From NCBI RefSeq assembly GCF_002113885.1, contig NW_018403528.1, positions 421,641-485,640 on the forward strand: DNA of 64,000 nt, in the 5' to 3' direction. Every line of letters starts with the position of its first letter. Position 1 is the stretch's first letter. Of this stretch, positions 59,158 to 60,845 are shown piece after piece. The notes beneath the pieces were generated by a model that saw nothing but the letters and a program-made list of their open reading frames with translations, had not been told where the DNA came from and searched no databases. The stretch is from Mizuhopecten yessoensis (taxonomy: Eukaryota). A program made the position numbers and the translations under genes.

Positions 59158-60845
59158 GAACTGTCCCAGTACAGTCTGATCCAGAGACGTATGACTTTAT
59201 CACAAGACGCGCATCCCTATTGTAACAGACGACAACCATTGGAGCGGAAACCCAATGTTATCGGACATGTTGGATATTGACGGGACACAAGTCTTGTGAA
59301 ACCGTACAGAAACAGTTATGAGTTTTTATTCAAGAACAATGAACACAATATCAACCGAAACACATCTTTATTGATTCGACAGCTCAATGATTAACTGAAA
59401 TATATATCCATGGTCAGTCTATTTACACTACGCTGGTTTCAAACGGATCACGTGAAGCATTGCCCTTTCCCGGTACTGATGATGACAGTACTGTAGTTTA
59501 AAAAAAAAATGTCAGTGGAAGTCGGACAAAACAGTGTGTTGGTCGAGAGTAAAACAAGAGCAGTTAGGAGTTGAAACAGTTCCAGTACAGTCTGATCACA
59601 AGACTCGCATCCCTATTGTAACAGACGACCACCATTGGAGTAGAAACCCAATGTTATCGGACATGTTGGATATTTACGGGATACAAGTCTTGTGAAACCG
59701 TACGGAAACAGTTAGGGTTCCCAGAGTTTACATTCAACAACAAATAAATAAAAATAACAAACACAATATTTACAGAGGAAATATTCATTGATTTGACACC
59801 CAAGGATGAAATGAAATATTTCCCCTATGTCAATTCACAGGCTAAGTTGATTCAAACGGATTGCGTGAAGTCATTACCGTTAGCAATGGGAATGATTTCT
59901 CGTTTACGAAAAGTGCCGACGGTTCCCGATTGGTTTCACAGCACTGTTGTTGGGAGCGCTGCTTTAGTCAATGGAGCGAAAAGTGAGTGGAAACTTGGCA
60001 AGACAGTAAAAATGTCGGAGTGGAACCGTTCCAGCACAGTGAAATCACAAGACACGCATCCCTAGTACAGAAGACGACCACCATTGGATCGGACACCCAA
60101 TGTTATCGCACATGTTGGATATTGGCGGGATACAAGTCTTGTGAAACCGTACGGAAACAGTTACGCCCAGAGTTTACATTCAACAACAATTAAATAAAAA
60201 CAATTAACACAATATTTACAGACGAAAATTGATTTGACACCCCAATGATGAAATGGAATATATTGTCTACGTGTTAATTACATAATGTTGATTTCAAACG
60301 GATGAAGCGAATAGAGAAACAGAACTCTGAACAAAACAGTTCATGTGTTGGGAACGAGTGGAAATGTTCCAGTACAGTCTGATCACAAGACGCGCATCCC
60401 TATTGTAGCAGACGACCACCATTGGAGCGGAAACCCAATGTTATCGGACATTTTGGATATTGACGGGATACAAGTTTTGTGAAACCATACGGAAACAGTT
60501 GTAAAATAAAAGAGTTTACATTTAAAAAATAAAAACAACTAACACAAGATTTACTGAAACAAATTTGTATTGAGTAATTGGCACTCCAAGGATTAATTGA
60601 AATATACTACCTTTTTGTCAATTTACGCCATGTTGATTTCAAACGGATGTAGCGAATAGCGAAGCGGAACTCGGAACAAAACAGTTCACGTGTTGGGAAC
60701 GAGTGGAACTGTTCCAGTACAGTCTGATCACAAGACGCGCATCCCTATTGTAGCAGACGACCACCATTGGAGCGGAAACCCAATGCTATCGGACATTTTG
60801 GATATTGACGGGATACAAGTATTGTGAAACCGTACGGAAACAGTT
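59158..60845 (-). repeat. Array of five conserved 140-bp hairpin modules (59158-59317, 59574-59713, 60023-60162, 60361-60500, 60706-60845) with divergent spacers; candidate structured ncRNA cluster
   Basis: The repeat is directly visible. Nested self-complementary segments: AACTGTTCC/GGAAACAGTT, GTAC/GTAC, CACAAGAC/GTCTTGTG, ATCCC/GGGAT, CATTGG/CCAATG. The strand is inferred from G-U pairing; ncRNA status is unproven. Confidence 0.85.

Follow-up and report, generated by a model that had tools for sequence, protein, structure and literature searches.

A dispersed family of tandem repeats whose foldback core is strand-specific, in the genome of Mizuhopecten yessoensis

Near one end of a 64,000-nt stretch of Mizuhopecten yessoensis DNA (the window), five foldback sequences follow one another head to tail on the minus strand, between positions 59158 and 60845. 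A first-pass annotation, made from the letters of the window, read them as a candidate local cluster of structured RNAs, either a hairpin-RNA, endo-siRNA or pri-miRNA cluster or a tandem family of small structured RNA genes. The locus raises the question of whether hairpins of this kind are working RNA units or the most conspicuous part of a repeat. We took the coordinates of the modules from an alignment of the five copies, and list them here in minus-strand order with the linkers between them and the sequences on either side. Scores in bits are those against covariance model R1, which was built from 28 copies of the family.

60846..61435, minus strand: right flank, upstream of the array on this strand; common to at least eight other array loci.
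60706..60845, minus strand: module 5, the first on this strand, a 140-nt foldback core; 164 bits; MFE -51.1 kcal/mol (z -4.8) versus -35.3 (z -1.8) on the plus strand.
60501..60705, minus strand: linker 4-5; no significant fold of its own.
60361..60500, minus strand: module 4; 97% identical to module 5.
60163..60360, minus strand: linker 3-4; contains blocks D2-D4.
60023..60162, minus strand: module 3; 151 bits; minus-strand MFE -58 kcal/mol (z -6.5).
59714..60022, minus strand: linker 2-3, the longest; 59895-59936 within it belongs to an unrelated palindromic repeat of high copy number.
59574..59713, minus strand: module 2, the best-paired copy; 168.9 bits; MFE -59 kcal/mol (z -7.9).
59318..59573, minus strand: linker 1-2; contains the ordered blocks D3 and D4, in common with other linkers.
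59158..59317, minus strand: module 1, a terminal variant with a 20-nt insert, placed by alignment of the copies and by comparison with other loci.
58998..59157, minus strand: left flank, downstream of the array on this strand; common to at least six loci.

Much of the layout described in the first-pass annotation was reproduced by this alignment. The modules start 416, 448/449, 338 and 344/345 bp apart, which agrees with the irregular periods reported before; four of the five are 140 nt long and the remaining one is 160 nt, as the earlier mention of a single 20-bp insertion implied. About four differences had been counted between copies 4 and 5, and we found exactly that number among the 140 sites of the module, versus 12 of 95 in the adjacent block (p 0.006). 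The spacers had been called more diverged and rich in indels; linker identity is 0.81 within arrays and 0.78 between arrays, against 0.91 and 0.88 for the module and a shuffled baseline of 0.75. The modules are clearly better kept than the linkers.

What is repeated in tandem is nevertheless the whole 338-449-bp unit and not the module alone, as seen both by repeat finding and with TRF, which returned a period of 345. Repeat finding also delimited a family, D1, of 235 nt with five copies in the array. Copies 4 and 5 of this segment are 93% identical, and conservation at a lower level therefore extends beyond the module: past its minus-strand 3' end another 70-95 nt are conserved. The earlier claim that conservation stops almost exactly at the base of the outer stem has to be given up for this side. 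A block that follows the module, CCACTCCCGACATGTG...GTTCCGCTC, is common to different loci, and within the AT-rich linkers of the array the ordered blocks D2-D4 recur.

Linker 2-3 differs from the others in one respect. Some 38 nt at 59895-59936 (part of ...TTTACGAAAAGTGCCGACGGTTCCCGATTGGTTTCAC...) are a very high-copy palindromic repeat, where read depth is 50-400 times that of the surroundings in all four read sets that we mapped. The reads at this position also show joints of the 'opposite strands' type and a wide variety of loose ends, from which we take the piece to be present in numerous transcripts or loci. It explains in part why linker 2-3 is longer than the others.

We next consider the fold. 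On the minus strand the module forms an imperfect stem of 36 bp that closes a branched apical domain of 64 nt, and not the end-to-end rod that had been proposed. Pairing joins 36 positions of the 5' arm with 39 of the 3' arm, and is interrupted near the base by a 1x1 mismatch, and elsewhere by a 3-nt bulge and a second mismatch. The suggestion that the two strands differ in their capacity to fold was borne out by the computed energies. For the five window copies, MFE ranges from -44 to -59 kcal/mol on the minus strand (z -4.0 to -7.9) versus -31 to -42 kcal/mol on the plus strand (z -0.9 to -3.8), with the minus strand favoured in all five. The same holds for every one of the 27 full-length family copies, with means of -50.4 and -38.3 kcal/mol, an advantage of about 12 kcal/mol for the minus strand. 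The consensus fold has seven G·U pairs, five of which lie in the outer stem, and A·C oppositions are absent from it. Under DNA parameters the gap between the strands narrows to about 2 kcal/mol (-19.8 vs -17.7). Since the linker alone is without structure (z +0.98), we ruled out a viroid-like rod of the whole unit; the unit as a whole reaches z -2.3, and this is due to the module.

The module had not been recognised as tRNA, 5S, U snRNA, SRP, RNase P/MRP, 7SK, vault or Y RNA, and our searches likewise matched no known family. Using cmscan, we found no match to Rfam 15 in 58500-61500 even at E<=10, and none in the whole window at the gathering score; ARAGORN reported no tRNA. Hammerhead, twister, HDV-like and other ribozymes were likewise rejected by Rfam 15 at E<=10, and the word CTGATGA occurs in one linker only.

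Covariation, to which the first-pass annotation had looked for confirmation of an RNA structure, did not appear. Neither RNAalifold nor pair counting detected compensatory change among 28 copies, all of them close paralogues. The covariation score was matched or beaten in 488 of 500 shuffles, and the share of cells paired in 490 of 500; double changes were seen in none of 34 predicted pairs and in 1 of 43 chosen pairs. Substitutions, counted by parsimony on a tree of 27 copies, give a more differentiated picture. Stems have 1.10 changes per site versus 1.32 for loops, and along the module the values are 1.22 for the 5' arm, 1.11 for the apical domain and 1.27 for the 3' arm, so that change is uniform other than at a cold spot at module positions 31-50, where the motif CAAUAUCC is invariant. 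Transitions in Watson-Crick pairs yielded G·U in 25 cases versus A·C in 8 (p 0.002). Per site, stems have two to three times fewer pair-breaking transitions than loops (p 0.005 against the expectation derived from loops), and transitions that preserve pairing occur in stems at loop rates. Transversions always break pairs; they are barely depleted, at 0.57 per site in stems versus 0.68 in loops. Taken together, these counts are real evidence of selection on pairing, but of a modest and internally mixed sort.

None of the runs recorded as RNA contains the array stretch. Of two raw RNA-seq runs, one random-primed and one polyA, roughly 12-13 million reads each were examined, and these placed 0-1 read on the array. 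RNAs of 140-170 nt are lost from standard RNA-seq libraries, and hence the scarcity of reads carries little weight. In two contig-only runs, taken to be RNA by guesswork alone, depth is flat at 4-8 and the same over modules and linkers. X1 contigs cover positions ~59247 to ~61382, with none over 59000-59246, and a single X18 read pair falls on the array, its first mate on the plus strand. Such a pattern is compatible with a long transcript made at a low level, or with carry-over of DNA. Of the transcription that the earlier reading presupposed, what stands is at best low and diffuse; the discrete small RNA does not, as neither the two raw RNA-seq runs nor the two contig-only runs gave a sign of one.

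We searched the genome (a 988-Mb assembly of 82,659 contigs) for further copies. BLAST with one module as query identified at least 41 copies on at least 14 contigs. Covariance model R1 identified at least 96 matches on roughly 25-35 contigs, about 60 of them strong (60 bits or more). Matches within one contig lie on the same strand and form short arrays, 300-700 bp apart. Not all low-scoring matches are family members: an unrelated, near-perfect palindrome of 120 nt with a GC content of 0.33 (L050:3078-3200, minus strand) obtained 36 bits from the structure part of the model, and matches of this grade must therefore be read with caution. An exact 20-mer of the invariant core has one match each in metagenome and viral contigs, which we attribute to chance since neither fits the model, and a literature search for arm and module sequences returned no match in the papers searched. 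With at least 96 model matches, dozens of contigs and flanks that are repeated too, the proposal of a local cluster of small RNA genes finds no support; the absent covariation, the nearly equal rates of change in stems and loops, the inconsistent T-run terminators and the lack of a discrete transcript in the reads also weigh against it. The annotation had also named dispersed copies with TSDs as the mark of a MITE; many dispersed copies do exist, but they are tandem arrays and not solo copies with TSDs.

Arrays at different loci share more than their modules. The right flank recurs beside arrays on at least eight contigs at 70-85% identity, and at two loci the similarity extends to about 62280. 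The left flank is present at about 10-11 loci, and one 48-nt stretch of it is 98% identical. Across loci the array keeps one orientation with respect to both flanks, and its last minus-strand module is a conserved variant common to them. At other loci this terminal module carries a 28-nt palindrome, flanked by a 7-bp duplication (TCTGATC), at the position of the insert, and the 20-nt insert in module 1 of the window is a shortened form of the two. Other loci also have AAAG|GTAAGT on the minus strand just beyond the array; the window copy lacks the stretch that holds it elsewhere, about 42-44 bp at 59103/59104. A well-conserved block of the right flank, at ~61150-61340, contains the words TGACGT, GGGGGCGTGG and TTTAAAT, which by eye appear promoter-like (CRE-like, GC-box-like and TATA-like).

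These comparisons show that about 10-15 arrays have common flanks and the same variant terminal module, the composite having been copied to those places, and that older arrays of the same core occupy a further 15-20 places. From the common flanks and the common terminal variant we conclude that array and flanks have multiplied together, as one composite element without coding capacity. Element ends, TIRs and TSDs were not found in the comparisons of loci, and homology stops at a different point in each. As the annotation had it, the copies share no ORF and show no TSDs at the module borders: there is no ORF of at least 100 aa in 55000-64000, including the array and its flanks, and no Pfam match in either. 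Beside the arrays there is no transposon domain or other consistent protein domain, and a coding partner or transposase was rejected after the matches near arrays proved unrelated (RVT_1 3 kb off at one locus, MFS, a Death-domain exon and low-complexity ORFs).

The surroundings of the arrays are rich in other nested repeats, among them tandem repeats of 146 and 27 bp and several MITE-like inserts. For about 90 bp within the extended right flank (61864-61954), a first look at the genome gave 1466 candidates, about 90% identical; this stretch is probably a separate MITE-like insertion. To the left of the array, 58950-58990 is a long run of homopolymer, about A10 and then C17-22, that is not common to other loci; the blocks that border it stand 1.7 kb apart in the paralogous locus C3953, and the run may mark a deletion or be an artefact of the assembly. 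Some 4.4-4.7 kb beyond the right end of the window, an ORF on the minus strand (L044:4378-4749) matches a Death domain at the borderline (22.3 bits; the cutoff is 22.6). A tandem repeat with a 27-bp period adjoins it (about 66790-68023 in window numbering) and also occurs in the collinear paralogous region of contig C5174, where homology to the window region is collinear over at least 15 kb at 70-80% identity. The tandem repeat with a period of about 146 bp (L039:1289-2465, L052:6373-8183) lies 2-3 kb from the hairpin array on C5493 and recurs on C76746, a contig without such an array. Elsewhere in the window there is a minisatellite at 55005-55608 (31-bp period, 19.5 copies, 82% matches), and at 49803-50879 (minus strand) an ORF of 358 aa that is composed of repeats and matches Mucin-like in Pfam (E 5e-24); it is probably a repetitive exon or a low-complexity tandem repeat.

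Because the same tandem repeat occurs at dozens of places in the genome, we consider the hairpins most likely to be selfish or satellite-like, and the array is probably a copy of a non-coding dispersed composite repeat and not a conventional cluster of small-RNA genes. As expected of a satellite-like repeat, the copies are head to tail and in register at several loci, and are non-coding. The composite consists of a conserved flank, head-to-tail units of 340-450 bp, a variant terminal module and a second conserved flank, with each unit made up of the 140-nt foldback core and an AT-rich linker. Arrays would expand and contract via unequal exchange or slippage, and the G·U-rich, strand-specific hairpin would have been inherited from the founding copy. 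The core may have stayed alike either as the part needed for the element's own spread, read in single-stranded form, or via homogenisation by conversion, and any transcription would be at a low level and pass through modules and linkers alike. Against the repeat reading stand the failure to find transposon termini, TSDs or a coding partner and, in the modules themselves, the much stronger conservation of the core than of the linkers, the presence of G·U without A·C and the rarity of pair-breaking transitions.

The last three observations speak for a different view, which we consider unlikely on balance: that the hairpins are working minus-strand RNA units. A Pol II transcript would start from the right-flank block (~61150-61340) or slightly beyond, and its stems would be cut, as in a pri-miRNA or an endo-siRNA precursor, or bound by protein via the invariant apical motif CAAUAUCC, the whole being a lineage-specific, repeat-borne cluster. 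Folding that is strand-specific in each of the 27 copies would be explained, as would the conserved upstream block with its CRE-like, GC-box-like and TATA-like words (picked out by eye). X1 coverage that spans the array and is absent over 59000-59246 would suit a transcript of this kind, and so would the orientation of the lone X18 pair. Microprocessor prefers stems of about 35 bp, a length that the stem of ~36 bp fits. However, compensatory covariation is absent and transversions in stems are hardly depleted; the loop, unlike that of miRNA hairpins, is conserved as well as the arms, and an apical domain of 64 nt is atypical of animal pri-miRNAs. No miRNA family of Rfam matches, the module strings are absent from the papers searched, and the reads offer little: nothing in the runs recorded as RNA, 0-1 read in the two RNA-seq runs and flat coverage elsewhere. 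Another alternative, in which every unit stands alone as a Pol III or snRNA-type small RNA gene of ~150-190 nt with a TATA-like box in the upstream linker and a T-run terminator downstream, is very improbable. It would account for the A/T-rich run (GTTGTTTTTATTTTTT...) that in many internal units precedes the module by 15-45 nt on the minus strand, and for a T4 or longer within 90 nt downstream in 19 of 30 units. But the other 11 units have no T4 in that interval, its position varies from +3 to +73 where present, and upstream of the first module in each array the sequence is quite different. The units have no A or B boxes, tRNA-like fold or Rfam match, and the random-primed RNA-seq run contributed zero reads. 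We ruled out Pol III genes on the inconsistent terminators.

The hairpin could also act at the level of DNA, as a cis-acting single-stranded signal of a rolling-circle (Helitron- or Helentron-like) or other DNA transposon, with the fold read on the transferred strand and the array as the equivalent of bivalve HINE repeats; we judge this a rather remote prospect. The fixed orientation of the array between its flanks is like that of bivalve Helentron arrays (PMC7492417). DNA hairpins tolerate G·T wobble, and a weak strand asymmetry is still present with DNA parameters; moreover, conservation of the core through a master copy would place core above linker and leave stems equal to loops. Yet with units of 340-450 bp and flanks of at least 160 and at least 450 bp, these arrays are far larger than described HINEs, homology ends at points that vary by locus, no subTIRs, terminal palindrome or left-flank microsatellite common to the loci were identified, and no Rep/helicase ORF lies nearby. 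Bivalve HINEs insert at T-rich/TT sites and leave no TSD.

If the array is only a composite repeat, as we favour, the practical value of these findings is that the family (140-nt core, at least 60 strong copies, fixed flanks) can be masked or annotated, which would keep its strand-specific hairpins from being mistaken for RNA genes time and again. It also illustrates cleanly how, in a tandem repeat, the core can be constrained when the linkers are free to change. From the rarity of pair-breaking transitions on one strand there is a hint that such repeats may be read in single-stranded form, as RNA or as DNA during copying. Should it be true that the stems yield small RNAs, the locus would show a repeat seeding new regulatory RNA loci in molluscs.

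Several known systems share features with this family. Like MITEs and foldback elements, the module is a non-coding, multi-copy, imperfect inverted repeat of about 140 bp; unlike them, its copies stand in register within tandem units that have ordered linker blocks, and are not solo insertions with TSDs. We therefore ruled out a MITE or foldback transposon on the homologous linkers of the tandem units and the lack of a TSD at the module borders. Zebrafish miR-430 and primate C19MC are tandemly amplified miRNA clusters. As in these, the hairpin is conserved and the spacer is not, and the stem is about 35 bp long; here, however, the 64-nt apical domain is conserved like the arms, the array is itself a dispersed repeat, and Rfam indicates no homology to any miRNA family. 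Retrozymes and hammerhead satellites include newt satellite 2, Schistosoma Sm-alpha and the circRNA repeats of mussels. Metazoan retrozymes resemble the present arrays in having tandem units of a few hundred bp and a structured, strand-specific, RNA-like fold in an invertebrate genome, but our units contain no self-cleaving ribozyme (Rfam, E<=10), their linker is unstructured and they form no compact rod. Retrozymes, tandem miRNA clusters and MITEs thus each have one or two traits in common with the family and each fail on a defining one.

The nearest described kind is Cg_HINE of the Pacific oyster, together with related bivalve elements (PMC7492417). Bivalve genomes contain many short, satellite-like arrays that lie, in fixed orientation, between the two conserved flanks of non-autonomous Helentrons; the HINEs described have repeats of about 160 bp, subterminal inverted repeats of 11-12 bp, a microsatellite in the left flank and a short right flank of 60 bp with a 3' palindrome (PMC7492417). 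The present family departs from Cg_HINE in its 340-450-bp units, its 140-nt strand-specific foldback core and its fast-decaying linker, in flanks of hundreds of bp in which we found no subTIRs, 3' palindrome or microsatellite and whose homology ends at points varying by locus, and in its low copy number (tens). Like Cg_HINE, it forms short head-to-tail arrays (~1-12 units), dispersed in the euchromatin of a bivalve genome, in constant orientation between conserved non-coding flanks. The family is an uncharacterised dispersed tandem repeat of an ordinary kind, with a strand-specific foldback core.
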